A DNA stretch of 61,020 bases, counting the filler, from Syncephalis fuscata S228 (Eukaryota > Fungi > Zoopagomycota), in NCBI GenBank assembly GCA_025786725.1. It is 3 parts of 3 records of this genome, joined end to end, with 100 filler letters (N's around TTAATTAATTAA, not from the genome) between each part and the next. Parts side by side here need not be neighbours in the genome. Positions count along the whole stretch, not along the records: positions 28,087 to 55,192 come from JAHLTZ010000106.1; 2 more parts are not named here. One strand, given 5' to 3'. The notes beneath the pieces were generated by a model. That model ran no database searches, was not told the origin of the DNA, and saw nothing but the letters and a program-made list of their open reading frames with translations. Positions 28,087-52,140 of this stretch are shown here, one piece after another (the first letter of the stretch is position 1; every line of letters starts with the position of its first letter). A program made the translations under genes and the position numbers.

Positions 28087-30348
28087 GGCTCATCGCCCAT
28101 GCCTAGTCGACTAGCTACACCGTCGTCAAGACGTAATAGCGGTGAAGAGGAGCGTGATAATGAGGAAGGCATGGCAAATGATGCCAATGATGAAGAATGG
28201 GTTACAGTAAGCGGCAAATTCCACTTTGTCGATTTGGCTGGTTCTGAGCGATTAAAAAGAACAAATGCTGTTGGCGATCGAGCCAAAGAGGGCATCAGTA
28301 TTAATGCTGGTCTATCGGCACTTGGCAATGTTATCAGTGCATTGGGCGACTCATCACGCAAAGTAGCCCATATTCCGTATCGTGACTCAAAGTTAACTCG
28401 TTTATTACAAGATTCACTCGGTGGCAACAGTCAAACATTAATGATTGCTTGTGCATCGCCAGCAGCTGTCAATGTACTTGAAACTTTAGTAAGTAATATA
28501 AATACGTAGTTTATTAAATGACTGTCTAACAAGTACATTGATACTATGGTGCTATTTGTAGAATACATTGCAATACGCAAATCGAGCACGTAATATTAAA
28601 AATAAAATTTCACTCAACGAGGAGATGTCAACCGATATCGGATATTTACAGGCCCAAGTCACAAAACTACGTGCAGAACTTCGTGCATTAAAAATGGCGT
28701 CACCTACACCAGAAAGTAAGTATAATAATAAGTAAATTACACTGACATTAACAATAATTTAGACAACCGTGAATTAGTACGATCTGCTTCGCCAAATCGA
28801 CCTGCTTCGCCAAGTCCTGCTTCACCAACTGTACCCAGTATCTCTAGTCCATTGTCACCATATCGTTTCAGATCGTCATCTATTGGCAATGGCAATGGCA
28901 ATAATAACAGCAGTAATGGCGACTCAATGTCTACATTTGCTACTCGTCGTATTCAAGAGCTGGAAACTGAAGTAACACGTGTCACTGCCTCTTACCAGCA
29001 TCTTTTAATGCAATATGAAAACATTTGCCACAGTAATTCTGCTTTACAGCAGGCCACGGTTCAAAATGGAATTCGTAACAAAGTTAAAAAACGACACGTA
29101 AGATCTGATTCTTTAAGTTCAACATCCTACGCCAGTTCAGAACAATCGATCGATGCTACAGATATGGACGATGACGATGAAAGTATACTAGAAGAAGACG
29201 AAGAAGAGGAAGAGGAGGAAGAGGAGGAGGAAGAGGAAGAAGATACTGGTTTAAGCGAAAGTGAATATGGCGAAGAAACGGAAAGTGAAGCTGAAACAGC
29301 CACTAGTGTGGGTGATGACCTTGAACGTGAACATGATTCACAAAACGGCGATACTACTATTAATGGTAATGCCGCAACAGCAACAGTAGAAGATACAACA
29401 GACGATGAAAGTTATATGGCTATGACATCGTTTCAGCAACAGGTTGAACCGGTGATTGAGGAGTATGAAAAAGTAGTAGCTGGACTTGAAGAGCAATTGC
29501 GCGAGACTGAAGAAGCAATTCAACGCACAGGAGAAGAGTTGTTGATGTATAAGGAACGTGCACTTCAAGCCGATGAAGTACAGCGAGCCAATAATCAAGA
29601 GTTAATGGATCTACGAACACAGTTGCAACAACTGGAACAAGCACATATTCTATACCGAGAACAAGAGGCCGATGCTGAATGTGCACAGTCGGAGATTACT
29701 AGACTACAACGAACAGTACAAGATTTAGAAGCACAATTGGAAGAGGAACGTGAAGCTGCTGCTGTTGCTGTAGCTACTGCTGCTGTTGCCGCTGCTGCCA
29801 ATAGGGCCACACCTCATATACGCACACCAGAATTAAAGGCCGATCATTTTGCAGCCAATAGTCATAGTGGTCGTGCTACACCTATACCAATTCGTGCTAA
29901 ATCTGTAGCCAGTTATACTAAAGAGCTAGACCAAACGGATAATGAAGAGCAGCCGCGACAGCAGCCACCCACACCACCACAAATATTGCTAAACTCGTCG
30001 GATATTACACTTGCCGTCTCGAATGACGCCGAGACTAGCTACGAGCAAGAGAACGATGAAGATAACAAAAGTATCATTAGCAATAGTAGAAGTATACATA
30101 GTCATGGTATTAAAAGTAGAAGTGGTAGTAGTATGACACAACGACACGCCATTGAACACTATGGAAGTGCATGTGATTTTAAAGAAAATCCTACGGCCGC
30201 CGCTGTTCTCTACCGACTACGCGCCGATCTACGTGCCGCCGAACAACGAGCCAATCGGTTTACGTACATGAATATTTTATTACTTATTCTTTGTGCCTAC
30301 ACAGCTTATTGGGCCTATAGGATGAATTTGACATCACCCGTATTCTAA
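28087..30348 (+). CDS. Kinesin-4-like (KIF4/KIF21/KIF27-type) motor, 5' truncated, with acidic tract, coiled coil and C-terminal TM helix
   Basis: [43 protein letters not shown]|[14 protein letters not shown]; exons 28087-28488, 28562-28715, 28763-30348. Confidence 0.9.
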
Positions 30349-38947: not shown

Positions 38948-41709
38948 TTAATTGGAATTTGCAACAGAATCTAACTCAGCCATACAAGTATCTTCCGACT
39001 AGATGTTCAGTTTAAATAAATCAAACGATTAGCTAATAGTGACAATTAAACAATACTATATCTTACCATTTGCTGTTCATCAGCAATACACAACGCCACG
39101 TAAAATGCTCTAGGTGAATCTCGCGGCATTGCATGGCCAATAGCAATATGGTGTTTTGCATACTCTGTATCCATACATCTGCTTTTAACCTCTAATACAG
39201 TTTGTGGCTCATCATCCCAGTCATTCAGCTGATTAGATAATTCGAAGCTGTTCTTTGCGGCAATTTTAATCGTTTTGTCATCTTCCGTTTTATATTTAAT
39301 TATAGTTGTTTGTTTTGGAGTAACATCACCAGTTGCCAATCTGGTGTGAACGTTCATTTGTATAGGAGTTACTCCAGGAAGAAGATAGCTTAGAAACATG
39401 CCATGACGACGATCCTCGTAAAATAGCGTAAATCTAATAAATTTCCGCTCGCCTTGTTTCAATTCTTCGCCTTTTCTAATATCATCTGGTATACCAGTGG
39501 AGAAAAAGTCGTTTAATTTCAAGGATATACTTGAGTGTTGATTATTTAAAACAACCGTTACTTTATAGGGTTGTGCAGTCGATGGTAAAGCTAAAAACAG
39601 CTGGTTATAATAACTATAAGCAATTATTTTAACTACTTACTTGCTGGAATTCTCGCCTCTTCATAGAATACCTATTAATTGCAATTAATACAGTGGGTAA
39701 GTGCAGTAGATTGATTATTTACCGCTGGATCGAATTCTTTTTTCAGCATTATTTTAAATAGACGATTAGGTTCCGAACTCAAATAAGTTATAAGCTGAAA
39801 ATTAACATCAGGCCTCAAGTTAATTCGTCGCTCCATTAGTCGTCCGTGGTCGTAAGAGTTTTCTGTAGTATTCTCTTGCTTGCCCACAATGCCCGAATAA
39901 GCAAAAAAGTAATCCAGTGTTTTTTCTAATTCCTCGTTTGAACTATTGCCACGGAAAGTAAACACCACAGCAGTAATAAACGAATCGTAAGTGCGCTTCA
40001 CGCGTAATAAGCAAAGATAAGGCGATTTAGCAACGGAAAGTGTAGGGGTAATAGCAAATAAATGCATAAATGACCAACTACTTTCTGATACTTTTTCGTG
40101 AAATATGCATTTTCCACTTGATGAAAGAACGCCACCACTGCAATTGCATTCAATTGAAATGGCGTTTTCATTGGCATGTTCAGGCATAAGCGGCTCAACT
40201 TCAATCTTTAAATCTCTTTCAATCTCCAATGCCAATATACCATGACCCTGCTTGTTGGATTTAATATAGCGATTAATAGTATTGCGAGCATCCTGCGAGA
40301 TGTCGCTATTAAAACATAATTGAGCAATGCTATTTGTTATTGGTGCTATGGTAACATACCTATTTTCACCTGTGGGTAGAAATAGTGGAACACCGTTAAA
40401 GTTTTTTGTAAACGCTTTTTCTAAACGAATATAAAATTCGGCATGCGATAAACGCTTAAATCTCACTGAAATCTTCAAGTCGAAATTATGCAAATGCCAC
40501 TGCGATGGACGACCACGCATAAACATGTGATGGCCCAAAATCTTTTCATGTGCGTGCAACAAAGCGTCCGTATATTCAGGGAAGTTTGCATTCTTGACGG
40601 CAAGAAGCGTACTACACACCTTACGCAACGTATGATCATGTGCAGTTACTAGAAAATCCATAGCTAAAAAAATACGGTAGCCCCACAGTAGTGGCGGTGC
40701 ATTTTGTTCACTATGCTGTAGTTCATAGACGACCGTGCCACTAGTACGCCCAAATGGTGTCTTATTTTTAAATATATACTTAGACTGCGCCCTATAACCA
40801 ATAAAATTGTGTCCTCTTGTCTTTAATTTACCATTTCTAACGATCGAACTGCAGTTGGTAAGTGTTAAATTTTCACAATCGTTGTGAATAAACACATTCA
40901 TACTGCTAGTTAATCCAAATTTATCATCATCTGTTTTAGTTTTTTCAGACTCGTTTCCTATAAAACATTAGTAAACCAACAAGCTCATTTGTACTTTAAA
41001 ACTTACCTGCTGTATCCCATGTGACATTCTCAAAGCTGTATTATTAAACAACATTATTAGCCAAATGACATTGGTCGTTGCTGTTCGCTTACTAGTTAGT
41101 GGTTAGGAAAAATGGTCGATTCATAATAGCATCCTTGTTAGCTGGTATTATCTCAACCTCCATTATGCCATTGGCAACGTCGGTTAAACTGACATTAACG
41201 GTGAATTTCGTGTCATCATCGCCAAGATTCCAGGTACGGATCATCATAGTGCCAGAAGGCTGGAATTGCGGCACAACATCTTTCAAGTAGTGTTCTTTAA
41301 GCAAACTAGTTGAAATATCCTGACCAGGATATGTTTCCACAAGGTTAAGCATTACTTTACACGCACCACCCAATTGAATATTCCAAGCAAGTAGCAAGTA
41401 GATGTTATGAGTGGTGGCGGGTGGCCGATTAAACGCTGTTATGCTATAGACACAGCATCCATCAATATGCGTTCCCAATGCATGGGCAATAAACCGAAAC
41501 GTTCTACTCTGCTCGGGCAATATACTGAATGCTTGTGGCTCGGAACACTGGCCAGCATGACAGTAGCGAGCAAAATTCTGTAGTTTCAATCTAGGATGTC
41601 TATTGCTAATATTAACCTGTAAGGTTGTACGTGTTTCTTGCCAAATAAAATAAGCAGCTCGACCGAGTAGTTCGGCCGCTTGAACTGCTCCTCCAATAGG
41701 ATCGGACAT
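38948..41709 (-). CDS. About 800-aa protein of four tandem actinoporin/cytolysin-like beta-sandwich domains (6 exons)
   Basis: In-frame GT-AG splicing links ORFs 41092-41709, 39675-40901 and 39046-39522 through small exons at about 41007-41035 and 39641-39671. Domains 1, 2 and 4 start with a V-x-I/L-x-N...L motif; domain 1 aligns by eye with actinoporins. Confidence 0.7.
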
Positions 41710-46037: not shown

Positions 46038-46343
46038 ACGGATGTTTAAAGTCTGGTTACTTTTTAGATCTATTGTTTATCCTACTCATCTCTTTCCTAT
46101 TTGTTTCTTGAATTGCCTTGTTATTTAAGTGTGCTATGCAGCACTTGAGGCATTATTCCCTTTTTTATTAGGAATAAAATTCAATACGATAAAATGGATG
46201 TCCAATGGTGCTAAATATATTTTAATATCTAATATTGTCTCCATGGCCATTGCTGTTTATTTAAAAATGTTCTATACTAGTAAGTGCTTTTGGTGTCAAA
46301 TAGCTTTTATTCTTAATACGTTTATTCACTTTTAATTGTTCTA

Positions 46344-48981
46344 CAATAGTGAGTGTTTTTTGGGTAAAACTGTTTTATTATAGGAAAAATTAGAAAATGC
46401 ATTGTTATTAAATTTTACCATAATAAAAATCACTTTTAAATTTATTAAATTTATTAATTAATAAAATCACTTTGTTTGCCCCACACTTTGTTTTCTGTAA
46501 TGCCTTTATCAAAGAATAGTTACTCTTTAATGGCATGTTTTCTTGTTTATAGCTGTTTCATTACTAGTTGTATCTATTTTTACATAACATATTTTTGTAT
46601 TGTATTTTTTAGCTGTATTTACCACAAGTATATCGTTGGAAGTCTTTTAACAAATAAAATAGGATTGGCGTTGATGTTGATATTGCTACAATTAACTAAA
46701 TTACGTAAATAAACAAAGTTTTAAATTAAAATTGTTGCATTTATTATGCTTAACTTTTTCCCATCAGGGATTTTTAACTTTGTAACTTTTATTATTCAAC
46801 AATATTATAAATACGTAATAATGTTACTCAAATAATAAAGATGCATTTTTATAATTTAATTCATTTTAGTTTATATCAAAATCCGTACAATTACAGTTTT
46901 TTGTTATAAATCTGCTAATTTGAGCTATTGTTATAAGTTAAAGTCATTTGATACTAATAATATATATTTTATTAAATTGATATTAAAATTTTAATTAAGT
47001 CACTGTTTCTATTTCTTTTTCTCCTTTGGTTACTTGGTCAATGCTACACTATTTATTACTATTGTTATAGCAATTTCATTTTTTTATCGAACCAAAAGCA
47101 GACCAAGCTTTGTAATAAATTTAGTAATAGATTTAATAGTATCATTACCAGAGTTATATGAACAACCATTAAAATGCTTAATATTGCACTAGGTAATTTT
47201 TACTAGGCCAGTTTTCTGCTTTCTGGCAGTCAAAACAAACTGAAATTTGTTGCTGGAAGAGTCTTCATGAGGACAGCTAAACTGTAATCTTGTTGAATTA
47301 CTATTTTTTTCTTTTAAAATTGCAATTGCTAACAAGCTTAACTCGTAAACAGCGGCCCTCAGTTCTTCAATACTGTTAAGTATAGCTTTTTTAAATAGTT
47401 CAATTGACATTTGGTAGATTGTTCAAAACGGCGTATTTTCTAATTTCCCCTTTAAAAAACAGTTTATTTTAATTCTGAATACGAATAAGCTAAGACGGCC
47501 AATAAAATATTTCATACAATCTAAAATGTGCAGTCTAATAATTCTACCCCATTTAATATTTGGCGTATATTCTACAACGTCATTTATATAAAGAGCATAA
47601 TTGATAATGCAATAACATTCGTTACCAAATCATTATATTTTATATGATAGCGTAGCTTCAAGAATAATATTATTACGGCTCTGCTTTTAAAAATCGTAAC
47701 TTAGATGATCAAGCAACGTATTGCCCCAATTCTATCTTATGCTGTTGACTTTTGATACCTACTGAAATTTACCTTACCATTCAGAATACGATGTGTTGGT
47801 TGATATTGTTTTGATAATAAGCGTATTTGTTATTTGTAATCAATTATTACAACTCAACTATAGCCAATGATAAAACTTAACGCTTTCTATTATTTCTTTA
47901 TTAAAATATTATTATTAATTTATTTGAATAATAGTATAGTTATGACATTGAAATAACAACAATAAGGCCATTGTAAAAATGTAATATTCTTATTTCTAAT
48001 AAATATGATTGCAGTAAAATATTTTGAAATATCAATAAAACACTATTTTAAAAATTTAAGCATAAAATTATTGCACCAATACTAGCAAAGTATGCTGCAG
48101 TATTAAAAATGATTTTAATGAAATGTATGTTAAAAACAATAGTATTAATTTACTTAGTAAAGCGCTAATAATACTGTGTAACCTTACGTAAAACCAAGTA
48201 AACTGTATGATATTTTGCACAAGTATGCACATAGCATATAGGTAACTATTGGCAAAATATATCGTTATTGTAGTGCGTAATGTTATAATAATTACGATAA
48301 TACACTAGTAAATGTATAAAAATAACAGTTTCTAGTCATTTATGACTTATATAACTAAAATACAAAAAAATGATTGCCGAATTCGGGTTCTCCGTGCTTA
48401 GTTATACGAATTGGCATAAGATTTATAGCAACAATTTTAATTTAAAACTTTGTTTATTTACGTAATTTAGTTAATTGTAGCAATATCAACATCAACGCCA
48501 ATCCTATTTTATTTGTTAAAAGACTTCCAACGATATACTTGTGGTAAATACAGCTAAAAAATACAATACAAAATATGTTATGTAAAAATAGATACAACTA
48601 GTAATGAAACAGCTATAAACAAGAAAACATGCCATTAAAGAGTAACTATTCTTTGATAAAGGCATTACAGAAAACAAAGTGTGGGGCAAACAAAGTGATT
48701 TTATTAATTAATAAATTTAATAAATTTAAAAGTGATTTTTATTATGGTAAAATTTAATAACAATGCATTTTTTAATTTTTCCTATAATAAAACAGTTTTA
48801 CCCAAAATCGATATTAAACTTTTCCAAAAATACCGGTTGTATTTTTTCAAAATCTGAAAACTAATAGGCAACTTTAAGTATGAAATTACATAATGTTACA
48901 TGCCATAAATTTGTATACAATTTTTTTCTGTATTTCTCAATCTTCCTTTTTTTCGGGCGCCAAAACGCTCACTCGATTCTG
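46344..48981. mobile_element. Non-autonomous element with about 380-bp near-perfect inverted repeats (46358-46738 / 48428-48807)
   Basis: The arms are reverse complements almost base for base; outer ends TA|CAATAGTGAGTG ... CTCACTCGATTCTG|TA suggest a TA duplication; no transposase ORF inside. Confidence 0.8.
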
Positions 48982-49060
48982 TAGACTAAAATAAAATAAT
49001 TTTAACAAGCTAGTTGCTGTTTATATAAAAACGAAATTAAATGAAAACTACATACTAGAT

Positions 49061-50812
49061 TTACAACTCTTTGTAAAGATCCTTGTGCTGAGCCTTAATC
49101 ATATCGGCGCCCTTCTCGCCAATCATGTAGACTGCGTTTTGGATTCGGCAGTCAGGAATGATAGGCATGATAGAAGCATCTATCACACGGAGATTCTTGA
49201 TGCCGTGGACGCGGAGCTGGGGATCGACGACACCTTGGTCAATGTTCTTGGACAGGCGAGCGGTGCCGCAAGGGTGGAATGCAGTTTGGCTTCGATCCAA
49301 AACGGCCCTCTTCATTTCCTCATCCGAATCGAGAGGCATATCCCAAGGGTACTCACCGATGACGATATCCTTAAAGCCTTCACCATGGAGGAGAAGATCG
49401 TAGGCCCATCTGACACCCTCACGCATGGCAATGATGTCCAGGTCATTGGCGAAGAAGTTCAGGTTGATGTTGGGCTGCACAAGAGGATCAGCACTGTTGA
49501 GTGTGACCTCACCGCCCTCGGACACCGGGCGAACCAGATCAACAACAACAGACGTGTAGCATCCTTCCTTAGGGGTAGGAAAATGCCATTGGAATGCGCT
49601 GCCGAACATGCAGACAAAGTCGAGTTCGAAGTGTGGCTGTCCCTTAGGAGAGAAAGGATCTAGACCGCCGTTATTGGCTTTGGCCCTACTGTAGACAGGA
49701 TCCTGGTTCAGGTTCTTATCAATGCGGGTGAAACCAACCATGTCCAGAAGGCCAGATCCCACAGGGCCTTCCTTGTTGCTGTGATATGCGGACATGGCAG
49801 CATCCTTGCGGGGACCGGGGCGCAGGAGGACGTCGTCCATACCAAAGCCGTCCTTGACACGCAGGACGAAGGGGACGGCGGGGTGATCGAGCAAGTGCTG
49901 GCCCACATGGCGCGAGTCGACAATCACATCAAGACCGTGCTTGGCCAACTCGGCGGCGGGTCCGACACCACTGAGCATCAGCAGCTTGGGGGTTTCAAAA
50001 ACGCCCTGGGAGAGAATGACGTCACGGGTGGCGTAGAAGCTGAGTTCGGCGCCGGTGGAAGCGATCACAGTCACACCAGTGCAAGCGCGGGTGGCCTTAT
50101 CGATGATTAAACACTTGCTGTGAACGGAAGAGAGAATTGTGATATTGGGCCTGTTCTTGACGAAGAGATAGCTACCTGAGCGCTGGCCATTGTGGATTGT
50201 GTCTGCACAGTGAGTGAGGCCGATCATCTTGCCGTCGTAGATGTTTTCCGAAATCGGCACGCCCTTGGAGACCCAGGCCTTTCTAAGAGCATCACGAAAG
50301 GGTTGCATCTCTGGAATCAGGGCAGCGTGAGATATCGGGATTGGTCCACCGGTACCAAGCTTATTAAATTCTGGACCATAGAGCTTTGGATTATCGTAGT
50401 AGGTTGCGCTCTTGCGGAAGTAAGGAAGAAGGTTATCCCAGGTCCATTCATTGCCACCAAACTCCCCCCAGTCGTCAAAGGTTGGTTTGCAGCCAGGGAT
50501 CCAGGTGAAGTAGTTGAGGCTGGAGCTGCCGCCGAGGATCTTGCCGCGGGTGTTGGGCTTCTCGATGCGCTCGTAATCGTCGCGCTTGATCATTGTGGTC
50601 TTGTAGGCCCAGTCGTATTTGCTGCTGCGGAGGTCCATGGCCATGGAAGGGGTGGTAATCTCCTCGATCTCGCTAGGATTGTCGACGCCAGCCTCGACAA
50701 TCAGGACACTGACATTGGGATTTTCAGCAAGACGGCCGGCAACGGTGTTACCAGCAGTGCCACCTCCTACGATGATGAAGTCGAAATGAGCTCCGTCTGT
50801 AGCTGCAGCCAT
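49061..50812 (-). CDS. GMC oxidoreductase (FAD), intronless, GC-rich
   Basis: GGGTAG ADP-binding fold, RGKILGGSSSLN, TPKLLMLSGVG, VGQHLLDHP, TAFHPCGT, VVDPQLRVHGIKNLRVIDASIMP; first ATG at 50812. Confidence 0.96.
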   Translation of the reverse strand: MAAATDGAHFDFIIVGGGTAGNTVAGRLAENPNVSVLIVEAGVDNPSEIEEITTPSMAMDLRSSKYDWAYKTTMIKRDDYERIEKPNTRGKILGGSSSLNYFTWIPGCKPTFDDWGEFGGNEWTWDNLLPYFRKSATYYDNPKLYGPEFNKLGTGGPIPISHAALIPEMQPFRDALRKAWVSKGVPISENIYDGKMIGLTHCADTIHNGQRSGSYLFVKNRPNITILSSVHSKCLIIDKATRACTGVTVIASTGAELSFYATRDVILSQGVFETPKLLMLSGVGPAAELAKHGLDVIVDSRHVGQHLLDHPAVPFVLRVKDGFGMDDVLLRPGPRKDAAMSAYHSNKEGPVGSGLLDMVGFTRIDKNLNQDPVYSRAKANNGGLDPFSPKGQPHFELDFVCMFGSAFQWHFPTPKEGCYTSVVVDLVRPVSEGGEVTLNSADPLVQPNINLNFFANDLDIIAMREGVRWAYDLLLHGEGFKDIVIGEYPWDMPLDSDEEMKRAVLDRSQTAFHPCGTARLSKNIDQGVVDPQLRVHGIKNLRVIDASIMPIIPDCRIQNAVYMIGEKGADMIKAQHKDLYKEL

Positions 50813-50961
50813 TGTGGAAGAAATCTGATAGGAATCGATATCTGTATCTTTTAGAGTTTGTAACAGGAAAAGTAAAACAAATGTGTTCTTGGATTGAGAA
50901 AGCACGATGTAACAGTGGAAAGCAAGTACGGAAAAGGTTGGGAGAACTGAAGAACTGAAAG

Positions 50962-51013: not shown

Positions 51014-51127
51014 TAAGGTATAATTTATGTTTTAATTAAGGTATAATTTATGTTTTAATTAAGGTATGATCTATGTTTTAATTAACGTATAATTTATGTT
51101 TCAAATAAGGTATAATTTATGTTTTAA
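51014..51127. repeat. Five tandem copies of a 23-bp unit TAAGGTATAATTTATGTTTTAAT
   Basis: Copies start at 51014, 51037, 51060, 51083 and 51106. Confidence 0.92.
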
Positions 51128-51919
51128 AAATATATATTTGACGTTTTAGAACAAATGCTAGAACTCGTACAATGAAAATATTTTTTTGTGAGTAAAGTAA
51201 AGAGAGAGAAAATAAAGGACGTCCATGCGTGCGCGTATGAAGTGGATTAAGCGGTAGCATTTTTCTTTCATTAATTTTATAAGACCTTCTCGTTCACTTG
51301 TTTCTTTTCTTTATCTTTGTGGGCAAATGAATTTTTTAGTTTATTAAAGCTATACGACACATTCCACGCCAACTAACATATTGAAGATACATCACACCGT
51401 ACAATGAATCGCCACTCGACTACGGCAACGATAGATTCTATTACTGTCGACAGCTTCGCACACATGATACCGCTAGGCCGGTGAACCTACTCAGCTATCA
51501 GTATTTAAGTGCGCACTAACTAGCAGTATTAATAAAATGGGAGCTACTGCATTTTGACTCCTACATTTTTATTTATCTATTTCATCACTATAGCGTGTAT
51601 AATATTACATCCAACATTAATTGATTCATGTGTAATTAGCAATACAATAATGTGATTAATTAGTTATTTTTATTATTGCTTTAACATCTATACATTGTCA
51701 TTATGATATTAATTGTTCAAATACCATTTATTTAGTCAGATTAGCTATAGAAAAGTGGCTGTTTAATAAACAACATTTATACTAATTATATTAATACTGA
51801 TCTTACATCACAAATATGCCCAGAATGCAACAGTAGAATATTAGAAAAACAGAAGAAATCGTTTAGATGCAATAGCCCATACTGTACATAAATTCAATAA
51901 CAACAAACGTGGAATGACA

Positions 51920-52140
51920 TGGAATTGCAATCATGTGGCTTCTATTAACATTCAATCAATCTTTCTACACATGGCCAGTAACAACAATGATCGGCCTCAA
52001 ATGTCTTAAAAAATCAATAGTATGTTATGTTATTTAAATAAATCAATTTATTAACAGTATTTTAATAGAAATCAATGTAGCTATCTTGCGTATAACAACG
52101 AAATGACTCTAATTGGAACAAATTTTACTTTGGAGCTCAA
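51920..52140. repeat. Dispersed repeat family B, copy 2 (upstream of catalase)
   Basis: Colinear with about 9850-10070. Confidence 0.8.

Follow-up and report, generated by a model that had tools for sequence, protein, structure and literature searches.

Does the minus strand of contig JAHLTZ010000106.1 of the fungus Syncephalis fuscata (Zoopagales; assembly GCA_025786725.1) carry a single gene for four tandem actinoporin-like domains, as a preliminary description of this DNA proposed, and if so what might such a protein do? The locus was analysed within a 61,020-nucleotide (nt) stretch, the window, in whose positions all coordinates are given. The reading we put forward, with modest confidence, is a leaderless protein of ~810 residues composed of four tandem actinoporin-like (cytolysin or 'AF-domain') modules that would bind and permeabilise membranes. 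Syncephalis and Thamnocephalis are biotrophic mycoparasites (PMC6784888), and S. fuscata itself is an obligate mycoparasite (PMC6784888, PMC13188720).

Gene structure and family

Three long minus-strand open reading frames (ORFs; 41709-41092, 205 amino acids (aa); 40901-39675, 408 aa; 39522-39046, 158 aa) are joined by a seven-exon model running from 41709 to 38948, which by reading of the DNA and a scripted frame check has no internal stop and yields an 810-aa product (Table 1). The six introns are all GT..AG, 49-68 nt long and AT-rich (G+C fraction (GC) 0.24-0.35). The ORFs thus splice in frame, through more junctions than three ORFs would suggest, into one gene with the end first proposed for it, and the motif strings quoted in the preliminary description are all present in their translations. 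The 68-nt GT..AG intron before exon 7 contains a CTAAT branch-like site, and relatives also carry C-terminal tails past domain 4; the alternative is that the ORF ends at 39046. Single exons or ORFs, or the public protein P0002, served as queries for searches and fold predictions, and the 810-aa join was used for counting frames and stops.

The order of the domains (D1-D4) recurs in long relatives. An exhaustive HMMER search with exon 1 matched 29 proteins (10 of them 733-868 aa long), and the ORFs of the window fall collinearly on the long relatives at ~1-200, ~233-620 and ~632-840, the third ORF matching, along its full extent, the C-terminal domain of relatives of 730-870 aa. The layout common to the Zoopagales family is D1-linker-D2-D3-linker-D4, with conserved F..W(D) and (L/F)Y linkers. 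In the relatives the linker with the (L/F)Y motif follows FDP and precedes the P-Y with which D4 starts, and the D3-D4 linker of the S. fuscata gene equals theirs in length and shares the motif only when the 31-nt mini-exon is included. At the position of intron 3 the relatives show no residues in the alignment.

Splicing can be compared with L001, a metagenomic contig of 3066 nt that carries a 61%-identical homologue and ends inside domain 2. The homologue has the same donor overlapping the ORF stop codon and, at the same position, a mini-exon of exactly 29 nt; exons of the two loci are 61-65% identical and ungapped, and introns are 27-28% identical and gapped. For exon 1 the ratio of nonsynonymous to synonymous divergence (dN/dS) is 0.16 with dS saturated, and at the level of sequence this comparison places the gene under purifying selection. 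A (GT/CA)n-like dinucleotide run (L001 1594-1700) lies directly upstream of the homologue's start.

The public annotation is shorter. P0002 is the NCBI model BDF19DRAFT_23505, a 624-aa hypothetical protein whose residues 1-610 are identical to the seven-exon model before intron 4 is read through to a stop at 39675. Identity over 610 residues implies that introns 1-3 and the 29-nt mini-exon were used independently by the NCBI model. If the annotation were right, the gene would end at 39675 and encode three domains, with the ORF downstream of it being either a gene in its own right or the decaying remains of a fourth domain. Consistent with this, NCBI places no gene over exons 5-7 (39046-39671), shorter relatives exist (P0006, 430 aa; P0011, 431 aa; P0024, 462 aa), and no clear CTRAY branch motif is seen in introns 3-5. 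However, the third ORF is intact but has no suitable start of its own for the domain, its alignment with domain 4 of seven long relatives runs from one end to the other, and its fold is predicted with confidence, while the 15 intron-derived residues at the C-terminus of P0002 have a predicted local distance difference test score (pLDDT) of ~30 and no counterpart in relatives. The linker reaches the relatives' length only by way of the 31-nt mini-exon. Collinear relatives, conserved splicing and linker length together argue that the four-domain gene is correct and the public model truncated; we regard one gene of four domains as very probable and a three-domain gene as highly improbable.

Several of the short family models (P0006; P0011, which is partial; P0024; and P0029, 341 aa) may be truncated too, and P0020 (1516 aa) looks like two adjoining copies merged. 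The weak HMMER matches P0023 (a bacterial PKD protein) and P0025 (a Cys-rich metagenomic protein) were judged spurious, and the 200-aa JGI matches, which are not counted as single-domain proteins, probably represent first exons that were annotated as ORFs on short metagenomic contigs, as shown for P0001 and L001. Apart from P0023, matches with a named organism come only from S. fuscata (two further paralogues, KAI9592553.1 and KAI9594012.1), S. pseudoplumigaleata (RKP27261.1) and Thamnocephalis sphaerospora (RKP09406.1, RKP06970.1, RKP09026.1 and others). D1 of the Zoopagales paralogues is 26-39% identical to that of the S. fuscata gene; all are annotated 'hypothetical protein', and none of them has a described fold or function. 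As judged from these matches, the family is restricted to a few mycoparasitic Zoopagales lineages.

Predicted folds and kinship of the domains

Protein-language-model features, treated as leads only, point for exon 1 (0.93) and the 408-aa ORF (0.89) to PF06369 (Anemone_cytotox), Nakanori, aegerolysin and FB_lectin clusters. AlphaFold2 prediction of P0002 with the family alignment gives a mean pLDDT of 80.6 and a predicted template modelling score (pTM) of 0.74. In this model D1 consists of a helix (5-25), seven strands, a second helix (134-148) and three strands, forming the β-sandwich with two flanking α-helices that characterises actinoporins. A Foldseek search of the PDB with D1 places actinoporins first (Fav pores 9EYQ/9EYP/9EYM, FraC 4TSY/3W9P, sticholysin II, equinatoxin II 1IAZ, bryoporin 7PUD and HALT-1; E-values 2e-10 to 1e-5, all probability 1.00), followed by Nakanori, IP-1A, thermostable direct hemolysin (TDH), Cry34Ab1 and ostreolysin A. 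Fold scores of D1 are 13.6 for Nakanori, 13.4 for Cry34Ab1, ~12 for TDH and fruit-body lectins and ~11 for aegerolysins, the next unrelated fold scoring ~6. The topology of the model is the cytolysin-type β-sandwich of the AF-domain superfamily (actinoporins, Nakanori, fruit-body lectins, aegerolysins, TDH, Cry34), and the actinoporin layout first recognised in D1 by eye is borne out at the level of predicted structure, the matches being of the kinds that the preliminary description had named as support. Chains of Fav and FraC in the pore state align from residue 1 of the model, indicating that the modelled N-terminal helix, a low-confidence stretch, is extended as in the pore form. A four-copy co-fold prediction of D1 (score 0.24, mark 0.32) speaks neither for nor against oligomerisation.

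The remaining domains repeat this arrangement to different degrees. D2 (pLDDT 84-96) has the element order of D1 minus the leading helix. D4, folded alone from exon 6 (pLDDT 81.3, pTM 0.79), is an all-β sandwich of seven strands, a low-confidence acidic loop in place of the helix and three strands; it matches an ESM-Atlas PF06369 cluster with a template modelling (TM) score of 0.67, and the next unrelated fold in its search scores 7.2. D3 (pLDDT 57-84) is modelled as a helix (419-431), seven strands, a helix (538-552) and three strands, which is the order of D1; the domain is conserved in the long relatives. From these models an actinoporin-like fold is very likely for D1, D2 and D4. For D3 such a fold is reasonably probable, judged from the order of its predicted secondary-structure elements alone. 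Thus three of the four domains originally proposed are recovered by structure prediction, and D3 agrees with D1 in element order without sequence or fold-search support.

BLASTP among the three ORFs finds no similarity; it takes profiles and structure to reveal the repeat. Profiles were compared with hhalign on domain alignments cut from the family, with and without secondary structure taken from the AlphaFold2 model. D1 and D2 align over 170 columns (probability 98.6%, E-value 6.6e-16), extending with secondary structure to up to 177 columns (probability 99.5-99.6%, E-value down to 2e-18), and D1 and D4 align partially, over the first 45-60 columns only (probability 76-86%). At the profile level D2 is a sequence-detectable duplicate of D1 without the leading helix, so the earlier statement that domain 2 repeats domain 1 stands, both by homology and by the shared strand and helix order of the model.

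The exons are laid out symmetrically: a domain exon, a mini-exon of ~30 nt (exons 2 and 5) and a domain exon occur twice, the halves being split by a 54-nt intron. A leading helix is present in D1 and D3 and missing from D2 and D4. There are hints that a unit of two domains joined by a mini-exon was duplicated to give the four; however, the intron phases of the halves differ (2,1 versus 0,1) and the sequence similarity is between D1 and D2, not D1 and D3.

Membrane activity and competing readings

Proteins of actinoporin-like fold use one end of the sandwich to bind lipids or glycans of membranes, and in actinoporins the N-terminal helix inserts and protomers oligomerise to a pore. By analogy, the sandwiches of the S. 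fuscata protein would bind a lipid or glycan head-group on a target membrane, four modules per chain providing avidity; D1 would be the membrane-active module and D2-D4 extra binding modules adding avidity or specificity. On binding, the D1 helix, perhaps together with that of D3, would detach, insert and permeabilise or perforate the membrane in the manner of actinoporins. Membrane or glycan binding is somewhat more likely than not, and true pore formation is rather unlikely. For the D1 helix (5-25) the hydrophobic moment is 0.37, a value that 2.7% of shuffles attain, and most relatives have a similar helix. The predicted amphipathic helix of D1 agrees with the single pore helix initially described, while the leading helix predicted in D3 suggests that 'one pore helix' may be an undercount.

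The N-terminus carries no signal peptide, in line with the preliminary description: the ATG is preceded, 18 nt upstream, by an in-frame TAG, the Met-started N-terminus recurs in relatives, and the segment contains acidic residues and lacks a hydrophobic core. A leaderless design would fit a defence protein of the cytoplasm that damage or ingestion sets free, or one delivered unconventionally where the fungus meets its host, and the protein may act as an effector in parasitism or defence.

A number of results weigh against a membrane-permeabilising, actinoporin-like protein. Pfam searches of the ORFs and ten relatives gave no family at threshold and no PF06369 at E-values up to 1, searches of PDB sequences with phmmer and the family profile gave no actinoporin chain at E-values up to 10 (chance matches only, E > 0.1), and a regular-expression scan of the three ORFs found neither P[WYF]D nor RGD in any domain. 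Comparison of D3 with D1, D2 and D4 by hhalign gave no signal with or without secondary-structure scoring, the N-terminal helix is predicted with low confidence (pLDDT 45-75), export to the host is unexplained since there is no signal peptide, and non-lytic binders are numerous among proteins with this fold (Nakanori, fruit-body lectins, aegerolysins alone). The same ORFs and ten relatives have no Pfam match to FB_lectin (PF07367), aegerolysin (PF06355) or Nakanori; matches to DExH14_plug, DUF1480 and Seadorna_VP6 were dismissed as sub-threshold noise. P-[WYF]-D, an aromatic cluster and RGD are hallmarks of the actinoporin phosphocholine/sphingomyelin site and of oligomerisation. Because sequence matches in Pfam and the PDB and these motifs are both missing, the protein is, on its predicted models, related in structure to actinoporins, its nearest kin in the cytolysin/AF-domain superfamily, and is not a sequence member of PF06369.

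The missing motifs also bear on the ligand and on the main rival. Sphingomyelin, the actinoporin receptor, is a lipid of animals, and bryoporin does not bind the sphingolipids of fungi (PMC9526159). Together with the absent sphingomyelin-site motif these points argue that the ligand is another one; a fungal sphingolipid or the sterol-rich membrane of a host or grazer is plausible. The main rival is a non-lytic multivalent binder comparable to fruit-body lectins, Nakanori or partnerless aegerolysins, an array of lectin or lipid-recognition sandwiches serving fungivore defence in the cytoplasm or adhesion to and recognition of host hyphae, in which the helix would be a structural cap and no pore would form. 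In favour of such a binder, the actinoporin lipid-site motif and RGD are absent, binding is all that three of the four modules can do, and cytoplasmic lectins and aegerolysins of fungi typically lack a signal peptide too; yet D1 keeps both helices, including the conserved amphipathic N-terminal helix that is absent from lectins and aegerolysins. We consider this rival rather unlikely, though a serious one.

The missing leader is also compatible with an intracellular housekeeping scaffold, a sandwich array acting for example as a membrane tether or adaptor, without part in attack or defence, in which the likeness to actinoporins is nothing but inherited fold. The compact three-domain prediction (pTM 0.74) and the ordinary housekeeping genes nearby would suit a scaffold, but the match to Vps13 has a root mean square deviation of ~20 Å, and the family is confined to a few mycoparasitic Zoopagales, whose genomes each hold several diverged paralogues, a pattern typical of interaction proteins and not of conserved housekeeping, making this reading improbable.

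An extension of the membrane-permeabilising reading is a covalent 'pseudo-oligomer' α-pore-forming toxin, in which four fused protomers with insertable D1 and D3 helices, tuned to fungal rather than animal lipids, would breach or condition host hyphae. We think this a long shot; if true, few chains would close a ring, and the protein would be the first fungal-membrane-specific and the first concatenated actinoporin.

Contig context and comparison with known proteins

Features of the gene are collected in Table 1.

Table 1. Exons and other elements of the four-domain gene (window positions; AF2, AlphaFold2)
Feature	Position	Strand	Description
Exon 1	41709-41093	-	Start codon and domain 1 (residues 1-205), complete predicted actinoporin-like module
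N-terminal helix, Gly/Ala-rich, amphipathic (residues 5-25)	41635-41697	-	Putative counterpart of the actinoporin pore helix (AF2, hydrophobic moment, relatives)
Exon 2, 29-nt mini-exon	41035-41007	-	D1-D2 linker FENVTWDTA, F..W(D) motif conserved in relatives; in P0002
Exon 3	40957-40360	-	Linker and domain 2 (40416-40907; P0002 residues ~233-396), predicted sandwich without leading helix
Intron 3, 54 nt, in frame, GTATGT..AATAG	40306-40359	-	Between D2 and D3 exons; also removed in P0002
Exon 4	40305-39723	-	Domain 3 (39738-40295; P0002 residues ~419-604)
Exon 5, 31-nt mini-exon	39671-39641	-	D3-D4 linker VFYEEARIPA; missing from public annotation
Exon 6	39590-39067	-	Domain 4 (39082-39567), predicted all-β actinoporin-like sandwich; missing from public annotation
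Exon 7	38998-38948	-	51 nt: 16-residue tail and stop codon; least certain exon

The neighbouring genes are ordinary fungal ones, encoding chitin synthase, kinesin, Duc1, a FAS1-type dehydratase-domain protein, a GMC oxidoreductase and catalase. The GMC oxidoreductase gene (49061-50905, minus strand) has no introns as modelled by NCBI (583 aa), and its GC is 0.47-0.56 against ~0.40-0.44 for other genes of the contig; its flanks (46087-49086 and 51087-52086) are AT-rich (GC 0.24-0.30), and a tandem repeat of a 23-nt AT-rich unit (51014-51127; 5 copies, 90% match) lies directly upstream. Horizontal acquisition of this gene is possible. On the plus strand at 28852-30348, there is a 498-codon ORF without a Pfam family match; its product is acidic and coiled-coil-like, contains runs of poly-Glu (trinucleotide repeats, 29190-29243) and ends in a hydrophobic tail.

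A limited text search found nothing linking actinoporin-like proteins with Syncephalis or Zoopagomycota and no description of concatenated or multi-domain actinoporin-like proteins; nor does such a family appear in a 2026 survey of mycoparasite effectors. As a conserved concatemer of four modules, the protein would give this toxin fold a new architecture and offer a natural experiment on avidity and stoichiometry in membrane attack. It is known only from obligate mycoparasites of an early-diverging fungal lineage, in which the molecular biology of interaction is almost unknown, and is a candidate for host-membrane recognition or anti-grazer defence. Nakanori, ostreolysin and equinatoxin have already provided lipid-specific probes, and a ligand other than that of the classical sphingomyelin site may yield a new one. 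The truncated public gene model and the missing Pfam entry are both correctable.

To our knowledge, actinoporins and their look-alikes are single-domain proteins. Actinoporins (equinatoxin II, sticholysin II, fragaceatoxin C, Fav, moss bryoporin) consist of one 20-kDa domain that oligomerises on membranes, whereas the S. fuscata protein is a chain of four modules and 810 aa that is fungal and leaderless, shares ~9-15% identity with them and lacks P-[WYF]-D and RGD. The AF-domain proteins that only bind (Nakanori and the fungal fruit-body lectins XCL, ABL and SRL) are likewise single-domain and have no detachable N-terminal helix. Aegerolysins depend on a MACPF protein as separate partner, and TDH forms homotetramers; no MACPF gene was seen among the genes of the 27-kb contig. 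Unlike in aegerolysins (ostreolysin A/pleurotolysin A, RahU), Cry34Ab1 and Vibrio TDH, the modules are here covalently concatenated. What is new is a known fold in a four-module architecture and in a new lineage, probably with a new ligand.

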